This document shows, one piece after another, positions 40,159-49,056 of a DNA stretch of 64,000 bases; within the stretch, counting starts at the first letter, position 1, and every line of letters starts with the position of its first letter. The translations under genes and the position numbers were made by a program. Source of the DNA: Hyaloraphidium curvatum SAG 235-1. Taxonomy: Eukaryota; Fungi; Monoblepharomycota. The stretch lies in contig JAIVFI010000041.1 in NCBI GenBank assembly GCA_025558095.1, positions 124,001 through 188,000 of the forward strand, read 5' to 3'. Under the pieces are notes generated by a model. The model saw only the letters and a program-made list of their open reading frames with translations, was not told the origin of the DNA and made no database searches.

Positions 40159-41850
40159 TTAATGAAGCTTGCGAAGAAAAGATGCTACGTCGCGGCCAAC
40201 CACCAATCCGGTTTCGATTGCGCCGTCGATGAAGCCCTTCCAGCCCTCGCTATAGTCACCGTTGGCAAAGAACATACCGTTCCCGTGCTTTGCCCGCAGT
40301 GCGATGTCGTGTCCGCTAGACCAGAACTCGGGTCCGTGGAATGACCATGTGCCCATCGAGTATGGGTCGTGGGTCCAGTTGTGGAAGGTGTAGGCCGAGA
40401 CGGGCTGTGAATCGCTGGTTCCGAAAACAGACAGGTCAGGGAACGACTTGAAGAGCCCATCCATGATCCGCTCCGGATCGTGCTTTGCTTCCAGCTCCGG
40501 ACGGTAGACGCTGGGCAGCGAATCGACGATCCCGCGGGCGCAGCCGAAGCCTACAAGAAGAGCTCCGCCGTCTCCCGTTCGCTTATCGCCCATACTCATG
40601 TGGAAGACAGGAGCGTTGTCGCCGAATCCTGCTGCAAAGCCCGATGCCGAAGGCGGTATGCCCGAGGCTGCGGTTGAGTGCGCAATGACCTTGTAGCCCT
40701 CCCCAGTGTGCGGTTCGCCGATAGCGGCAGCTTTTGCCGTGGACAGAGGCGGGCTGAACGAGACCTTGTGCAGAACATTGTGAGGAATCGTGATGATAGT
40801 TGACCGGGCTTTGAAAGCAACAGCCTCCGCGGGGTTGGACGGTGTCGGAGTTGCGAGGGGGTTCAAAGTGGTCGAAAGTGTCACGACCCCGTCAGCTTCC
40901 GTGACGGAATCGACGACACGATCGAAGACGAAATCGATCTTTGCCCCCGCAGACAAGGCGTCGTCCAGGATGTGGCCGAGCAAGTTGGTGGTTCCATGCT
41001 TCAGCTTCCAGACGCCGCCGGCCTCGACCAGCCCCTCCACCGTGTGCCCGGGAAGCGAGAACCAGCGCCACGCTTCAACAAAGCCCATCTTCTTGGGATC
41101 GGGTTGCAGCGCCAGCGAGGACATGTACGCGAGCACGTAGTCGGCCTGCTTTCCATTGATCTTGCCGGCCTTGAGCAGCTGCTCCACCCGGTCCCCGACG
41201 GATAGCGCATCCCATTTGGCGAGCCCCTCGGCGTTCAGGTCGCTCGTCGAGAGCGTGAACGGCTGCGGAATGTCCTTACGGCCCAGGAAACCGTCGACGT
41301 CAAAGAAGGCGACGAGGGCCTCGTCGTAAGATGGGTCGTATTCGACACGGGAGAACGTCGTGTGGGTGTCCCCGGGTTCGACAAACGTGAGCGACGTTGC
41401 GCCGGGCTTGAACAGGGACTCGCTGGCGACGAGAGAGTTCCTCAGGCCGTAGCGCGTGAGCTCGGCAAAGACATGGGGCTGCGACACATGCACCCATGTT
41501 CCGCCCATCTCGACTTTGGTCGTTCCTTGATCGCCTCCCCAGGGGAGCTCTGCCGTGAAGGTGCGTCCGCCGATCCGGTCGCGGGCTTCCACCACGAGGA
41601 TGCTCTTCACGCCCCGCCAGGCCAGCTCCCGGAGCGCTGTGAGGCCCGCAAAGCCAGCTCCGACAACGATGCAGTCGTAGACGTCCGAAGACGCGTCCGT
41701 GACGTCGACAGAGGGCGGTTTCGAGGCAGCGGATGTCGGAATGCCGAACGAGCCCTTGAAGGCGCCGGAACCAGCGTCAAGCAGAAACGTCGTGCCATCC
41801 CGGGTCGACGGAGGGACGGACGCGCCGCCGGACGACACCGAGGGTGCCAT
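40159..41850 (-). CDS. Flavin monoamine oxidase family protein, intronless
   Basis: VVGAGFAGL, VEARDRIGGRTFT, EMGGTWVH, W..DPYSMGTWS, FANGD..GWKGFIDGAIETG. Confidence 0.9.
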   Translation of the reverse strand: MAPSVSSGGASVPPSTRDGTTFLLDAGSGAFKGSFGIPTSAASKPPSVDVTDASSDVYDCIVVGAGFAGLTALRELAWRGVKSILVVEARDRIGGRTFTAELPWGGDQGTTKVEMGGTWVHVSQPHVFAELTRYGLRNSLVASESLFKPGATSLTFVEPGDTHTTFSRVEYDPSYDEALVAFFDVDGFLGRKDIPQPFTLSTSDLNAEGLAKWDALSVGDRVEQLLKAGKINGKQADYVLAYMSSLALQPDPKKMGFVEAWRWFSLPGHTVEGLVEAGGVWKLKHGTTNLLGHILDDALSAGAKIDFVFDRVVDSVTEADGVVTLSTTLNPLATPTPSNPAEAVAFKARSTIITIPHNVLHKVSFSPPLSTAKAAAIGEPHTGEGYKVIAHSTAASGIPPSASGFAAGFGDNAPVFHMSMGDKRTGDGGALLVGFGCARGIVDSLPSVYRPELEAKHDPERIMDGLFKSFPDLSVFGTSDSQPVSAYTFHNWTHDPYSMGTWSFHGPEFWSSGHDIALRAKHGNGMFFANGDYSEGWKGFIDGAIETGLVVGRDVASFLRKLH

Positions 41851-42021: not shown

Positions 42022-43082
42022 ATGCGATCGGTGATTTCGTTGGTGGCGGTCGGCTTGGCCGCCTTGGCCCCCGCTGCGCTTGCCCGGCCGGCGACGAAAC
42101 CGCCCTCCGCGACTTTGCCTGTCGTCCTCTGGCATGGCATGGGCGACAGCGGGGACTCGGACGGCATGGCCTCGGTGGCGTCGATGATCCAGGACGTCGC
42201 CGGGTCGGACGTCTACGTCGCCTCCATCTCGCTCGGCGACGACGACAAGCGCGCGAGCTTCTTTGGGGAGGTTAACGAGCAGGTGGACGCAGTCTGCGAA
42301 TTGCTCGCCGAGGACGCGGAGCTGCAGGGCGGCTTCATCGGCATCGGGTTCTCGCAGGGCGGGCAGTTTCTCCGCGCCTACGCGGAGCGCTGCAACGACC
42401 CGCCGCTGAAGACCCTGATCACCTTCGGCGCCCAGCACATGGGCGTGGCCTCCCTGCCCGGCTGCCCCGACGACGACAGCTCGGTCGCGTGCTCGATCGC
42501 CAGGAACCTCGCGCTGCGCGCCGTCTACTCGGACTTTGTGCAGTCGCGCGTGGTCCAGGCCCAGTACTTCAAGGATGTCTCGCGCTACGACGAGTACCTG
42601 GAGAAGGTCAAGTTCCTGCCCGACATCAACAACGAGGGCGAGGAGAAGAACGACGTCTACAAGAAGAATCTTGCGTCGCTGGACAAGCTGGTCCTGATCA
42701 TGTTCACCAACGACACGACTGTGATTCCGAAGGAGAGCGCTGTAAGCCCTCATTCCGGCCACTCGAACGCCCCTCCTAACCACGTCCCGCCTGCCAGTGG
42801 TTCTCGTTCTATGACCTCTCCGAGGAGAAGGTGCTCACGCCGATGCGCGACCTGCCCATCTACAAGGAGGACTGGATCGGCCTCAAGGCGCTGGACAAGG
42901 CCAAGAAGATCGACTTTGTCGAATGCGTCGGCGGTCACATGCAGATCTCCGAGGACTTCTTCACGGACGTCGTGCGGAAGTACATTGGCAACGGAGGAGG
43001 CAAGGGCGGCAACGGTGCCAGGCGGTTCGTCACCAAGACCGTCCGACTCGGAACCGAGGAAGCGCTCGAGATTCAGCAGTAA
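42022..43082 (+). CDS. PPT1: Palmitoyl-protein thioesterase 1-like, signal peptide, intron at about 42742-42797
   Basis: PVVLWHGMGDS, GFSQGGQFLRA, QHMGV, VQAQYFKD, FLPDINNE, DTTVIPKES, YKEDWIGLK, GGHMQ. Confidence 0.93.
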
Positions 43083-43143
43083 CGCCACTGCGGGGCATCA
43101 TTATGTATGGTAAACGAATCGATTACAGATTCAGATTTTTCGC

Positions 43144-46100
43144 TCAGGCCTTGCCCTCCATCTGCTTGAGGTCCTCGAGCGCGTTGCCGGTCGCCTTCAG
43201 ATCGAACTTGTCGACGAGGAACTGGAGCGCAGCGGGGCGGACAAAGGCAGGGAGGCGGGGGCCGATCCTCACGCCGCGGAGGTTGAGGTGGAGCAGGGTA
43301 AGGAGGATGGCGACGGCCTTCTGCTCGAACCACGAGACGACGAGGTTGAGGGGGAGGTCGTTGACGCCGCACTTGAAGTGGTTGGCAAGAGCCACGGCGA
43401 TCTGGATTGCAGAATAGGCATCGTTGCACTGCGATGGAATGTCAGCATCCGTCAACCTTGCAATCCACCTGTAAGCTCACCTGTCCGAGGTCAAGGAGGC
43501 GGGGAATCCCGGTGTCGCCAATCGTCTGGTACTGCAGCTTGTCGCCGAGCACGCGGTACTTGCCGCAGCCCGAGGTGAGGACCACCGAGGTCGGGGGCAG
43601 GTTCTCCATCAACTCGCTGTAGTAGCTGCGCTCGCCCTCGAAGCCGTCGCAGCCGCCGACGTAGTAGAAGCGGGTGATGAGGCCCTTTTCGATGGCGCCA
43701 ATGACGGTGGGAGCCACAGAGAGCACCGTCTCGAGGGCGAAGCCGACGTTGTACGACTTGGCGGGCTTGCCGAAGGGGTCGAGAGGATACGTGTACTCGG
43801 TTTCACCCTCCTTGAATCCCGGCATTTGCTGTGCCTTCGCGATCACGGAGCTGAAATCGAAGCCGTTTATCGCCTCGCAGCCGGGAAACCCGACGGCGCC
43901 AGCGGTGAAAATGCGGTCCTTCATCTCCTCTTTCGGCGGGACGAGGCAGTTCGTCGTCATGACCACAGGGCCCGGGAAATGAGGAAATTCGACGGTCTGG
44001 AAGTGTTTCGGCGTGAGTGGAGACCTCCGAGAGGCCCAGTGCATGCAAACGCACCTGGCGCTGCCATGCGACACCAAAGTGACCAGCCAGGTTGCCGTAC
44101 TCGCGGAGCTTGGGGTAGCCGAAGGCCGGAAGCATCTCGCCGTGCGTGTAGACGTTGATGCCGGTGCCCTTGGTCTGCTCGAGCAGCTCCTCCAGGAACT
44201 TCATGTCGTGACCGGAGATGAGGATCGCCTTGCCGGGCTTGGGCGCCACGGGCACCACAGCAGGCGACTGAGCGCCGTGCGTGACGGTGTTGGCGCGGTG
44301 GAGCGTCCTGCGAGGAAGAGCGTTAGCGTGGGAGGGGGCTTCCCAACCCGCGCGGCATGCACTTACTCCATCGTGATGAGGTTGGCCTCCCCGCAGCGGA
44401 GCAGCATGCCGACCACCTTGTCCAGGTCGTAGGCGTCGGGTCCGATGAGGAACGCAAGGGCCTCGTTGACGTAGTCAAAGATTCGCGCATCCTCCTCGCC
44501 GAGGAGCACGGCGTGATCCGCGTACGCCGAAACGCCCTTCAATCCGTAAACCAACATCTCGGCGAGTCCCACGACGACGTCGTTCTTGACGGTGCGGAAC
44601 TTGGCAAGCAGGCCGACGAGCTCGCCCTTCTTGGCCAGCGCGGCGGGGTCCGTCAGGCCGACCGAGAGGTCGGGGATCGGGCACTTCTGCTGCGCGGCGC
44701 CGACGGCCTTGCAGATGTCGGCGTAGAGCTGGCCGCGGGACTTGGTGGCCTGGCCGACCTTGAGGATGTAGTCGGCGATCGCCTGGCTATCGAAGTTGAC
44801 GTTCGTGAGCGTCGAGAACAGGGCGAGCAGGGTGAAGCGGTCCGTCTCGCGGTCCTTGGCCTTGTCGGCGAGGGCGGCAGGCACGTTGCCCTTGGCGACG
44901 AGGGTGCGGATCTCGTGGTTGTACCAGCCGAGCCGCTTGACGACGTCGACGAGCAGATCCTGGAGGGCGGCGACCTCGGGGGTCTTGCCGCAGACGCCGA
45001 CGCTGGAGTCAGAGGAGCATCAGCATCCATCCCGAGCTCAAAGGAAAGGAGATTGCTCACGTCGTGCAGCCCTTGCCCTGGAAAGTCTGTTCACATTGCA
45101 TGCAGAGCATTTTCGCTCCCTCGAAGACGGCGGCGAGCGGCTTGTCCTGCTCGGCCTTGGCGGCGTAGTCCTTGAGCAGGTTCTGCGCAAAGAGGTTGAG
45201 GACAGGTCCGCGGGGAGAAAGGCGGCCGCGACCCACCTCGACGTCCACCTCCCTCGTGTACGCCTCCACGGTCCACCTGTTGGGCTTGCCGGGCACCATC
45301 TCCCCCTTGACCTCGGCCAGCTCCGCCGCGGCGGCCTGCGGGTGCACCCCCTTGACGGCGGCGATCGCTTCCTGGATCGACATCTCGACCGCCTGAGGGA
45401 CCACGCCGGCGGGGCCGGTGTAGACAAAGACGCCCTTGCTGTCGAGCAGGGCCTTGACGGCGGACTCGGACTTGCTCAGCGAGTCGGTGATGAGGCTGCC
45501 CTGGTCCATCGCGGCGGTAGAGAGCTGCATCCGCGGATCCGAGCGGTCAGCGATCCGACGCCACGCGCTGCATGCGGGCTAGGGGACCCACGTTGCACAC
45601 GCCCTGCGAGGCGTACTTCCCGAGCTCCTCCTCGAACACGAAGTCCTTGTCCGCGTGCCTGAACCCGTAGAAGAGCTCGATCGGCGCCACCTTCTTGCCC
45701 TGCGCCTTGAGCGCGGCCCAGTGCTGCACGAGCCCGCGGGCGACACCGATCCCCGAGCCGAGGCCGACGGCGACCACGGGCACGTCGGGCGAGGGCACGA
45801 GGATGGGGCTCTGCTGCACCTTGACCTGGACCTTGTCGCCGGGCTTGAGGGCGGCGAGGTACCCGGAGGCCAGGCCGACGAACTTCTTGGAGGGGTTCGA
45901 GAGCGTGGCCCAGACGTCGGCGGCGAAGACGAGGTCGATCTGGTTGGGCGAGGCCAGGGGGGAGCTGGCGATCGAGTAGTAGCTGAAAAGAAAGGGCGGG
46001 TCAGTGGGCGATAGATGCGCCCAGATCGCACGAGACGAACCGGGGCTGAAGCCTCGGCACAGTCGAAAGCAGCTGCTCGATTGACAACCTGGCCGACGGG

Positions 46101-47692
46101 AACTTTTCCATAGCATCCACGAACGAGAACACCTGCAAAGGGGGGAAAACAGTCAGCACCGAAGCGCTCGGAACCCGCACCCCGATCAACGCACCTCTCC
46201 GTTGGTCAGCTTCCCGTACTCGTTGCCCTCCTCCATCCCCTCGGCAACCTCCACCAGCCTCTCCTTCTCCTTGGGATCCGTCGCCATGACGCTCAGCGCC
46301 TCGAGGAAGCTCCGCGTCGCCAGACCCTGCAGCTCGAGCTCCTCGGCCAGCAGCCTGCGCACGGTGGTCGTGTGGCCCTGCGAGGGGTCGTCGACGCTCG
46401 TCACGCGCACGGACGAGTCGATGGTGGTGCCGCCAGGGAGGAGGATGGCGTTGTAGGCGCGGTCGACGAGCGCGGGGGGGTTGGTGGGCGTCACCTGAAG
46501 TGGGACAAACGGTGATCAGTCGATGGTGGGGCCCAATGAAGGGAAGGAGACGCACGAGGACGTGGCCCGCGACGGGGTAGCCGTCATTGGCCTCGATCGA
46601 CACCAGGCGGATCTCCTTGGCGGTGCCAGGCTTGGAGAGGACCTCGTTCGTCTTGACCGTCGCGGCCTCGAAGCCGGGCAGCGCGGCGGGCGAGAGGGCC
46701 GCGCCGGGGGCGGGCTGCACGCGGAACGAGACGGGGAGCGAGGCCGAGGTCGTCGCGGTCTGCCCGAGGGCGAACCTGGCCGATGGGAGAAGGAGATCAG
46801 CGATGATTTAAGGCGGGCTAACAGCGCGATGACGCACCAGATCGACTTGACGAACGGCCTGAAGGCGGCCTCGTGCCCGCTGCTCGAAAACTCGTCGCCG
46901 AAGCCGGCCGGCACGAGCTGCTTGGCGCCGAGCTCCTTCATGCGGGACTCGAGCCTCTTTGCGGCGACGTTGAAGTTGTCCTTGTTGGCCTTGTTTCCGA
47001 GGCCAAAGACGGCGAACTTGACGTTCTTGAGCAGGTGCGAGGCGGTCTGGGTGTCGGCGGACTCGAGGGCCTTCCAGAACGAGAGGGCTGCGAGGGATGG
47101 GAAGCGTTGATGGTGAGCGGCAGGCATCGGCGGTGATCAGGGGGAGGCGCCCACCGTTGTCCGGGAATTCGCCTGCAGGTGCATGGAAAAGGTGGGAGAA
47201 AAGGAGGACGGTTAGGTTCCGTTCGGCACAGCTGCAATAGCGGCACGACAAACCATTGTAGAATGTCGATGACATAAGGACGACGGTCCCCTCCTGCGAC
47301 AGGGCCGAGATGACGCCGCCGCGGGGGCCGGCCTGGGCGACAAAGTCGGCCATGCTCGAGACCCTGACCGCGATGCCGCGTGCCTTGGCGAACGAGGCGA
47401 GTACATGTGCGAATGCCTGCGTATTGCCGGTTTGCGATCCGTAGAGGACGAGCATGCGCGACGAGTCCTGCGGGCTTCCTGCGGGGGCGGCGGACGCGAA
47501 CGTGCGCGGGGCGCTCGTCTGGAAGGCGCGCACGGCGGCGGCGGTCGGGGCGCGGGCGAGGCGGGCGGGCGCGGGGCGCGCGCGCGGGACGGCGGCGGCG
47601 GGGCGCGCGGCATCCGCGGCGGCGGCGAGCGGGGCCGCGCGGGACGTCGCGCGAGACGCCGCGCGGGCCGAGGCCGACGACTTCGTCAACAT
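43144..47692 (-). CDS. hcp: Fusion: mitochondrial-type presequence + flavodoxin + FNR-type FAD/NAD(P)H domain + hybrid-cluster protein (Hcp), about 12 exons
   Basis: Flavodoxin: [38 protein letters not shown] domain: [35 protein letters not shown]. Hcp: [74 protein letters not shown]. Confidence 0.92.
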
Positions 47693-48204
47693 GGCGGCGC
47701 GGCCAGGAGAGAGAGGGGGTTGTGATGGAGGCGGCGGTCCCCGCCCCCGGCCTTTTGACTCGACGGCCGATCCTCATCCCCAGACCAAGTCACATCCGAG
47801 CAAGGAGGACACAAAAAGTGCACAGAAAGAATTTTCCTGCCCCGGAGCTAACGCAGAATGTCTCCAGGATTCCACTGCCGGACGGAAGGCTGGCGTTATA
47901 CGTTTGATGCAGCGTTGAAATGCTGGGGTGTTTGACGCCCTCACAGCCACTTCTGATCGGCGGGTCGGCGGCCGCGCGAGGCCTTCAACTGACCTCCGTT
48001 TCGTCGTCCTAGGAAATCGGGAGTCACTTGCCTTGCTCTATCAGTGGCTTCACGTGGTTGCTGCGCAGAAGCCCCGTTCCCCGGCTTGTTTGTTGGGCAA
48101 CCCAGCGGTCGCCGCGCGGGTGGATCCGACACGTCATTCCGTCATTCCGAAGAGATACTTATCTTCATCGCCCTTCAAACGCTCTCGCCGCTCCCGCCAT
48201 CTCG

Positions 48205-49056
48205 ATGAACCGCAAGAGCCTGTGGGGCGGCTCCCTCCGCGTGCGCCGGCTCAAGCCCGCTCCCTGGCCGCCCGGCCGCCCCCGCCCGCGCCTGGTGCTT
48301 CCGTGGGAGGTGGCCGCGATAGTGCTGCGCTTTCTGGACCCCGCGTCGGTGCTCTCCGCCGCCCGCTCGTGCCGCATGTTCCACGACGTCGTCGGCTCGC
48401 GGGAGTACGACTTCTGGGATTCGTGGCTCCGCGCGCCCGCGGGCAACTTCGGGCTCGAACGCCGCCGCGCCTGGGACGCCGCCGCCGCGCTGGCCGCCAC
48501 CTTCACCGCCGTACCAGCCGAAATACGTGTGCCGGTCGCCGTGGCCCAGCTGGCCGCGAAGAAGTGTCAGTTCTGCTGCGCTTCACCCGGGATCCCAGTC
48601 GCGCCCTGGGGATGGAGGTGCTGCAAGGGTACCCACGCGGTTTGGGAGCTCCCCTGGGGCCTCGGCAAGAAGCACATGGCGGGCTTCCCGGCCGGCAAGA
48701 CGAAAGCTTTCTCCAAGGTCCACAAGCACCGCATCGAGTTCGAGGTCTACTCCAAGTTCACCGTCGAGCAGGCAGCGAGACGCCTCTGGGAGGTGCCGGA
48801 AGGAGCCAGCCTCGGGGAGCGCTACAAGGAGGGCGCCTGCAGGCGCAAGGCGCTGATCCGGACCAAGCTCGAGGAGAGGAAGCTTCTGCACTTTACGCAG
48901 CGCGTTTCCAAGATCGCGTTCGCCAAGATGCGGGAGCTCGAGCTCGGTGCGCCGTGGAGCGAGGTGGAGAGGTGCGTCGACGAGGCCGTGGACGAGTGCG
49001 AGCGGCACATCCGGGAGAAGAGGGCGGCGAGGCAGGGCGCACCGGCGGCTGCGTGA
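48205..49056 (+). CDS. F-box-like hypothetical protein
   Basis: LVLPWEVAAIVLRFLDPASVLSAARSCRMFHDVV; a later CQFC..WGWRCC motif. Confidence 0.65.
   Translation: MNRKSLWGGSLRVRRLKPAPWPPGRPRPRLVLPWEVAAIVLRFLDPASVLSAARSCRMFHDVVGSREYDFWDSWLRAPAGNFGLERRRAWDAAAALAATFTAVPAEIRVPVAVAQLAAKKCQFCCASPGIPVAPWGWRCCKGTHAVWELPWGLGKKHMAGFPAGKTKAFSKVHKHRIEFEVYSKFTVEQAARRLWEVPEGASLGERYKEGACRRKALIRTKLEERKLLHFTQRVSKIAFAKMRELELGAPWSEVERCVDEAVDECERHIREKRAARQGAPAAA

Follow-up and report, generated by a model that had tools for sequence, protein, structure and literature searches.

Electron-transfer partners of class I hybrid cluster proteins (HCPs) are unknown (PMC10502027), and the locus described here raises the question of whether an HCP can carry its own electron donor. 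The locus lies in a 64,000-nucleotide (nt) stretch of the genome of the fungus Hyaloraphidium curvatum SAG 235-1 (contig JAIVFI010000041.1, positions 124,001 to 188,000; hereafter the window). There, the minus-strand gene at 43144..47692 encodes a presequence-like extension, a flavodoxin, a flavin adenine dinucleotide (FAD)-binding domain, a reduced nicotinamide adenine dinucleotide (phosphate) (NAD(P)H)-binding domain, a linker and a class I HCP. Its 13 exons are separated by 12 GT-AG introns of 52–81 nt and translate into 1269 amino acids (aa) with no internal stop, and the GC content at third codon positions is 0.77–0.99 across all 13. The H. curvatum database protein KAI9002911.1 ("Prismane-like protein") is identical to residues 80–1269 of this model and served, as P0157, as the query for one homologue search and a cluster look-up. 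Pfam searches carried out exon by exon matched Flavodoxin_1 in exons 1 and 3, FAD_binding_1 in exons 5 and 7, and Prismane in exons 10–13, an order that agrees with an earlier claim that the reductase is placed in front. Judged from its sequence, the product is by every testable feature a class I HCP, built like a diflavin-reductase fusion that is neither NADPH-cytochrome P450 reductase (CPR) nor the sulfite reductase flavoprotein CysJ. This gene is the sole HCP locus in the 31.9-Mb genome.

The original prediction, made from the letters of the window alone, described a single minus-strand gene with a direct junction between its halves and an in-frame 54-nt intron near that junction, and all three points hold. 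The open reading frame (ORF) at 45057-45530 continues from the end of the reductase to the first HCP cysteines without a stop whether or not the intron (45183..45236, minus strand) is removed. This intron has GT..AG ends and coincides with a gap in the alignment against the Basidiobolus homologue, and the two halves are separated by no stop codon and no intergenic space. A single 4761-nt RNA-derived contig, running from 47508 to past the stop codon, is free of all 12 introns, among them the junction intron and the two flanking an 18-nt microexon (47155..47172, minus strand) that lies inside the loop binding flavin mononucleotide (FMN) and whose letters are present in the contig between the flanking exons. 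The splice joint 45237/45182 in this contig connects the last reductase exon directly to the exon in which the HCP starts, bridging the halves as expected for one transcript. The transcript evidence consists of this one contig from one public run of one study; the RNA label of the run is a guess, and the study is probably the same as that used for the annotation. We take the contig for spliced RNA because the twelve GT-AG introns are missing from it, and one contig by itself is no proof of a single transcript. Since it also merges the convergent neighbor past the stop codon, two adjacent genes might have been wrongly joined, a prospect we consider practically nil: the frame is open with or without the intron, the splice joint spans both halves, and at least about 70 homologues share the join, several of them intron-free on genomic contigs. 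Taken together, these observations effectively refute a two-gene artefact.

A search with the HCP-encoding exon 10 recovered several proteins of 1186–1235 aa in which the HCP begins at about residue 610 and the domain order is the same. The family sharing this order extends over six or more major eukaryotic groups and includes early fungi, ichthyosporeans, oomycetes, glaucophytes, Chromera, a pelagophyte, and euglenozoans. Fungal and ichthyosporean members come from Gonapodya (two paralogues), Basidiobolus, Podochytrium, Polychytrium, Siphonaria, Creolimax, and Sphaeroforma, and further members from Saprolegnia, Achlya, Aphanomyces, Thraustotheca, Cyanophora, Cyanoptyche, Chromera, Chrysophaeum, Papus, and Rhabdomonas. 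The fusion also occurs in many environmental contigs and in a transcriptome tagged Hpha, which we take to be Hemistasia. Source annotations call these proteins hydroxylamine reductase, hybrid cluster protein, prismane-like, or hypothetical. All named sources among the matches listed are eukaryotes and none is a prokaryote; a prokaryotic genome scan returned two distant stand-alone HCPs and no fusion, a viral scan small flavodoxins only, and the ESM Atlas no cluster of the fusion. On these matches, the fusion is a widespread family and no peculiarity of the H. curvatum genome. Other long HCPs among the matches listed carry HD, AraC, or Rrf2 domains.

The HCP half (residues 691–1269; 43147..45110, minus strand) matches Pfam Prismane over profile positions 19–513. 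The cubane spacing C-x2-C-x8-C-x5-C read earlier from the sequence is found as C693, C696, C705, and C711 (44990..45104, minus strand, split by intron 9), each kept in 70 of the 71 aligned rows on which all family conservation counts are based. The seven hybrid-cluster ligands, previously described as intact, could all be located (H952, E976, C1020, C1119, C1147, C1176, and E1210), their assignment coming from alignment of a Gonapodya orthologue (P0156) to the E. coli and Methanothermococcus HCPs. All 11 iron ligands, 4 of the cubane and 7 of the hybrid cluster, are kept, in 67–71 of the rows. P0156 scores 593 bits against TIGR01703 (cut-off 361) and passes the cut-off of PRK05290, and it reaches 22 bits against a CODH model, under the cut-off of 478. 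The short x2-x8-x5 cysteine spacing lacks the class II protrusion and the middle region of about 100 aa is present; among the comparison proteins, the E. coli HCP carries extra residues in its cysteine motif and class III aligns over part only. Because of this spacing and the full middle region the HCP half is assigned to class I, as originally proposed. The full-length fold was predicted for P0156, which is 64% and 80% identical to the H. curvatum protein in the reductase and HCP halves, respectively, and shows a full CPR-type module followed by a class I HCP (predicted local distance difference test score (pLDDT) 90.6, predicted template modeling score 0.80). Template modeling (TM) scores are 0.90–0.93 against class I HCP structures and about 0.8 against CPR and the nNOS reductase.

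The reductase half follows the order of diflavin reductases with the CPR/NOS/CysJ/BM3 fold: flavodoxin, connecting, FAD and NAD(P)H domains. Exons 1–3 encode the FMN-binding flavodoxin domain (residues 80–235; 46838..47455, minus strand), with Flavodoxin_1 E values of 2e-5 and 3e-12 and family-conserved motifs; a fold predicted for exon 1 from its sequence alone reached a pLDDT of 44, too low to be of use. The connecting and FAD-binding domain (about residues 270–495; 45817..46675, minus strand) contains the R-x-Y-S motif, with R440 and Y442 in all 71 rows and the catalytic Ser443 in 69. The FMN loops, this FAD motif with Ser443 and, in the NAD(P)H domain, a Gly-rich loop, Arg548, Glu657, and the flavin-shielding aromatic residue are near-invariant in the family. 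The two halves are connected by a linker of 31 aa (residues 660–690; 45111..45257, minus strand), split by intron 8, with a conserved D-x-E-N motif (D664 in 70 and N667 in 69 of the 71 rows); across the family its length is 22–55 aa.

Separate phylogenies of the halves each gave one clade. Reductase halves group together with a Shimodaira-Hasegawa-like approximate likelihood ratio (SH-aLRT) support of 100, or 97 under a mixture model with two related rows included, and HCP halves (99/97) group within a larger eukaryotic HCP clade. Distances in the two trees correlate (r 0.88), with none of 999 permutations as high, and the halves have thus diverged together. Because each half forms one clade and the distances correlate, we take the fusion to have a single origin, the two halves having since been passed on together apart from some later fissions; nested within the fusion HCP clade are four HCPs that stand alone or are shortened (five in another tree). 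The fusion tree conflicts with species relationships, placing oomycetes beside chytrids and ichthyosporeans and a pelagophyte beside euglenozoan-like rows, a pattern suggestive of transfer of the fusion between eukaryotes.

The reductase tree is unrooted and has five reference rows, NOS, NDOR1, and MTRR not being included. In it the fusion reductase falls on the side of pyruvate:NADP+ oxidoreductase (PNO) and the hydrogenase-fused modules in the split from CPR, BM3, and CysJ (SH-aLRT 99–100), and it has the motifs G-L-G-T-G and Y-C-G-x-x-G-x-x-P in common with those modules. Of the CPR/NOS/BM3-like reductase proposed earlier, the idea of a self-sufficient design is supported, but the closest relatives are the modules of PNO and the CysJ-fused hydrogenases, not CPR or BM3. 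Membership of CysJ was rejected (P0156 scores 148 bits against the TIGR01931 cut-off of 668, and the clade is separate), as was CPR proper, given Met or His at the Arg597 site, no Lys602, no membrane anchor, an N-terminal reductase, and a clade of its own. We likewise rejected the idea that the fusion arose recently from the native CPR of the fungus. A close reductase paralogue in the H. curvatum genome was sought by exon-level search and not found, the best match being 39%.

Several products of fission or further fusion were seen. Four tandem 756-aa genes (P0007; L018:49-10817, plus strand) encode flavodoxin-plus-HCP proteins without FAD and NAD(P)H domains, an architecture that we read from its sequence as a later fission of the fusion. 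At L016:2611-8727 (plus strand) an intron-free, one-strand gene run contains a fusion gene and then a stand-alone HCP identical to the fused HCP part. A stand-alone 597-aa reductase of the fusion subfamily (L049:58-1851, plus strand) has a linker remnant at its end and, being nested in the fusion clade, is considered a fission product. The 1528-aa ORF on a JGI metagenome contig (L031:22-4608, plus strand) joins a fusion-type reductase to RasGEF, ankyrin repeats, and hemerythrin, with no HCP; it might act as a Ras activator that senses redox state or oxygen, but lies on a single contig that may be a chimera. Such fissions, with stand-alone HCPs and a stand-alone reductase inside fusion clades, the joining of the reductase subfamily to a RasGEF-ankyrin-hemerythrin protein, and the far N-terminal position of the FMN domain would all fit an enzyme that operates between chains or in pieces, either as a dimer passing electrons from FMN to the cubane of the other chain, as in NOS and P450BM3, or as a polyprotein cleaved at the linker, its reductase serving other acceptors too. 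We regard this as very unlikely, since the linker is tight in length (median 31 aa) and partly conserved and class I HCPs are monomers.

The public annotation begins at Met80 and leaves out the first 79 residues, which we include as a mitochondrial-presequence-like extension (47456..47692, minus strand). Its start codon lies in a GCCGCC-ATG context, its codon usage matches the rest of the gene, and its start resembles that of P0156; the RNA contig overlaps just its last 53 nt (to 47508). The Arg/Ala/Ser-rich, nearly acid-free character noted before is evident in residues 1–78, with 10 Arg, 1 Lys, 30 Ala, 10 Ser, and 2 acidic residues, and the net charge is +10 over 70 aa. Together with R-x-F cleavage-like sites this composition fits a putative Arg-rich presequence, and there is no hydrophobic anchor at the N-terminus. 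The HCP of Acanthamoeba is mitochondrial by microscopy and increases in hypoxia (PMC13632651). Among the 67 members with an intact N-terminus, the extension is positively charged in 34 and there is none in 22, suggesting that the family probably has both organellar and cytosolic forms. Because many members have no presequence, a mitochondrial location does not appear to be a family-wide trait. The second Gonapodya paralogue (P0158, P0159) has an acidic stretch at its start instead, and Gonapodya may keep one organellar and one cytosolic copy of the fusion.

With moderate confidence, we favor a single-chain, self-sufficient HCP in which electrons pass from NAD(P)H through FAD, FMN, and the [4Fe-4S] cubane to the hybrid cluster, reducing nitric oxide (NO) to nitrous oxide (N2O) in the mitochondrion; the conservation seen across the family appears to strengthen the idea of a self-contained electron chain. 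After import into the matrix the presequence would be removed, and the presumably cofactor-loaded protein would accept a hydride from NAD(P)H, with NADH plausible, onto FAD, from where single electrons would move to FMN. The flavodoxin domain would then swing off and reduce the cubane, situated immediately behind the 31-aa linker, and the cubane would pass electrons on to the hybrid cluster, where 2 NO would be converted to N2O under low oxygen, protecting Fe-S enzymes. In this scheme the fused module would take the role of the separate Hcr of enterobacteria. The HCP of E. coli has been reported to be a high-affinity NO reductase (PMC7412212).

Several points weigh against this reading, in which we infer the cofactor content, the direction of the electrons, the use of NADH, the substrate, and the location. 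The function of HCPs is itself debated (PMC7412212). No clear NirK-type source of NO was found in the genome by exon-level searches, which can miss genes; 22 of the 67 members have no N-terminal extension; and the RNA evidence comes from one run, in a contig that extends into the convergent neighbor. The remaining points concern the NAD(P)H-binding domain: Pfam NAD_binding_1 had no match to the exons at E 0.01, neither the G-I-A-P Pro nor the residues for the 2'-phosphate are retained, and the catalytic Cys, kept in 60 of the 71 rows, is Thr in all five Hyaloraphidium and Gonapodya proteins.

This last domain (about residues 496–659; 45258..45816, minus strand) was delimited by alignment with CPR, BM3, PNO, and CysJ and by conservation counts. 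It is divergent but present, as the alignment and the predicted fold of the orthologue indicate, and contains the Gly-rich loop, Arg548, Thr606 at the catalytic-Cys site, Glu657, and the flavin-shielding Tyr659. Of the reductase modules first proposed, the flavodoxin and FAD parts and the HCP were thus recovered by Pfam, and the NAD(P)H part was not. Ser443, Glu657, and Tyr659 occupy the serine, acid, and flavin-shielding aromatic positions, with Thr606 replacing the Cys of the triad. CPR without this Cys transfers hydride more slowly, and some relatives function without it. In rat CPR, Arg597 and Lys602 bind the 2'-phosphate end of NADPH (PMC12472590); in the family the Arg597 equivalent is His and the Lys602 equivalent is missing, and the H. 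curvatum protein has Met at the first site, where Ser-Arg has become Ala-Met, and has lost the Lys/Tyr pair. NADH is a plausible reductant because these NADPH-specific residues are gone. The same substitutions, with the absent NAD_binding_1 match and the natural occurrence of flavodoxin-plus-HCP proteins without an FAD part in the four tandem copies described above, could instead mean that the NAD(P)H site is impaired in this fungal lineage and that the flavodoxin domain works with an outside donor such as ferredoxin, hydrogenase, or another flavoprotein. We find this distinctly improbable: Ser443, the Gly-rich loop, Arg548, Gly607/Gly610/Pro613, Glu657, and the shielding aromatic are all retained, the Thr is common to five proteins of two genera, and the reductase halves of these five are 54–64% identical, unlike what decay would produce.

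A self-sufficient reductase-HCP might also have another job, namely the reduction of hydroxylamine or peroxide, or the making or removal of protein S-nitrosyl groups. All of these activities have been proposed for HCPs, and for the eukaryotic ones the question is open (PMC7412212, PMC10502027); moreover, the genome already encodes a flavohemoglobin for NO and, as noted, no clear NirK. We nevertheless think another job unlikely, as hydroxylamine affinity is low and the redox potentials suit a reductase over an oxidase (PMC7412212). The family-wide retention of a fused supply of reductant also argues for net reduction. The main reaction of flavohemoglobin requires O2, so an anoxic NO reductase would complement it.

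The flavohemoglobin gene is spliced and encodes a globin plus an FAD/NAD reductase (L021:482-1791, minus strand; genome contig C28). This aerobic-looking fungus also has a group A [FeFe]-hydrogenase gene without introns (L019:991-3297, minus strand; genome contig C40), whose product starts like a presequence and carries a short additional domain at its C-terminus; the HydG maturase and PFL were not found in exon-level searches of the genome, which can miss genes. Within the window, the convergent neighbor at 42022-43144 (plus strand) resembles a secreted palmitoyl-protein thioesterase, and the merging of both genes in the RNA contig suggests overlapping 3' untranslated regions. An intron-free flavin amine-oxidase-like ORF (40159-41850, minus strand) and an F-box-like ORF (48028-49056, plus strand), the latter divergently oriented about 330 nt upstream of the fusion gene, were named by eye. 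We found no evidence for neighboring genes as functional partners and rejected this possibility.

A full-text literature search, with incomplete coverage of the likely papers, returned no description of a reductase-HCP fusion; a passing mention somewhere is conceivable, though we would not expect one, and we know of no characterization. As a tentative but serious proposal, the family may constitute an ancient and so far undescribed class of single-chain NAD(P)H:NO oxidoreductase confined to eukaryotes, in effect a "NOS chassis run backwards", spanning fungi, holozoans, stramenopiles, alveolates, glaucophytes, and euglenozoans. If true, this would bring to three the Fe-S enzymes that a PNO-type diflavin module serves, the fusion being the first with the module in front, and would provide an unrecognized N2O route in free-living aquatic microbes, making these a candidate N2O source. 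Published work leaves the role of eukaryotic HCPs unsettled (PMC7412212, PMC13632651), and the natural fusion names an electron donor for one large eukaryotic HCP branch where the class I donor is a stated gap (PMC10502027). A one-protein assay with the physiological reductant could tell apart the proposed roles as NO reductase, hydroxylamine reductase, peroxidase, and nitrosylase, with no need for artificial dyes. The fusion would likely add an NO defense to early fungi and to oomycetes pathogenic to fish, crayfish, and plants, and structurally it is a diflavin reductase with 600 more residues after the flavin-shielding aromatic.

Compared with known systems, the HCP half resembles the class I HCPs of Desulfovibrio vulgaris (1e1d/1e2u), Methanothermococcus (8cnr), Chlamydomonas (HCP1-4), and Acanthamoeba in cubane spacing, middle region, the seven ligands, and fold (TM 0.90–0.93), but those proteins stand alone, whereas the fusion has a three-domain diflavin reductase in front. 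Like the fusion, the class II E. coli Hcp is served by a dedicated pyridine-nucleotide flavoprotein, Hcr. Hcr is described as an NADH oxidoreductase on a polypeptide of its own, carrying FAD and [2Fe-2S], while the fusion has an FMN flavodoxin in the same chain; the class II cysteine motif, three residues longer, is absent from the fusion. Class III HCPs with rubredoxin (Methanothermobacter, 7e0l) and a bacterial rubredoxin/flavin-reductase-HCP (P0376) also place an electron carrier at the N-terminus, but the carriers are unrelated and their HCP halves, unlike that of the fusion, fall outside the eukaryotic clade. A bacterial fusion of this make-up, 714 aa long and with rubredoxin-like and flavin-reductase domains next to the HCP, lies at L112:5001-7145 (plus strand). 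PNO and the CysJ-fused [FeFe]-hydrogenases of protists likewise put a diflavin module of the same reductase branch on an oxygen-sensitive Fe-S enzyme. Their module is C-terminal (PMC4989108) and that of the fusion N-terminal, with a different catalytic partner, and the PNO module accepts electrons where that of the fusion would donate them. P450BM3 and NOS share with the fusion a self-sufficient design and a flavodoxin-FAD-NAD(P)H module of the same fold, in reverse domain order, with a heme rather than an Fe-S acceptor and 22–24% identity; NOS makes NO, whereas the fusion would remove it.

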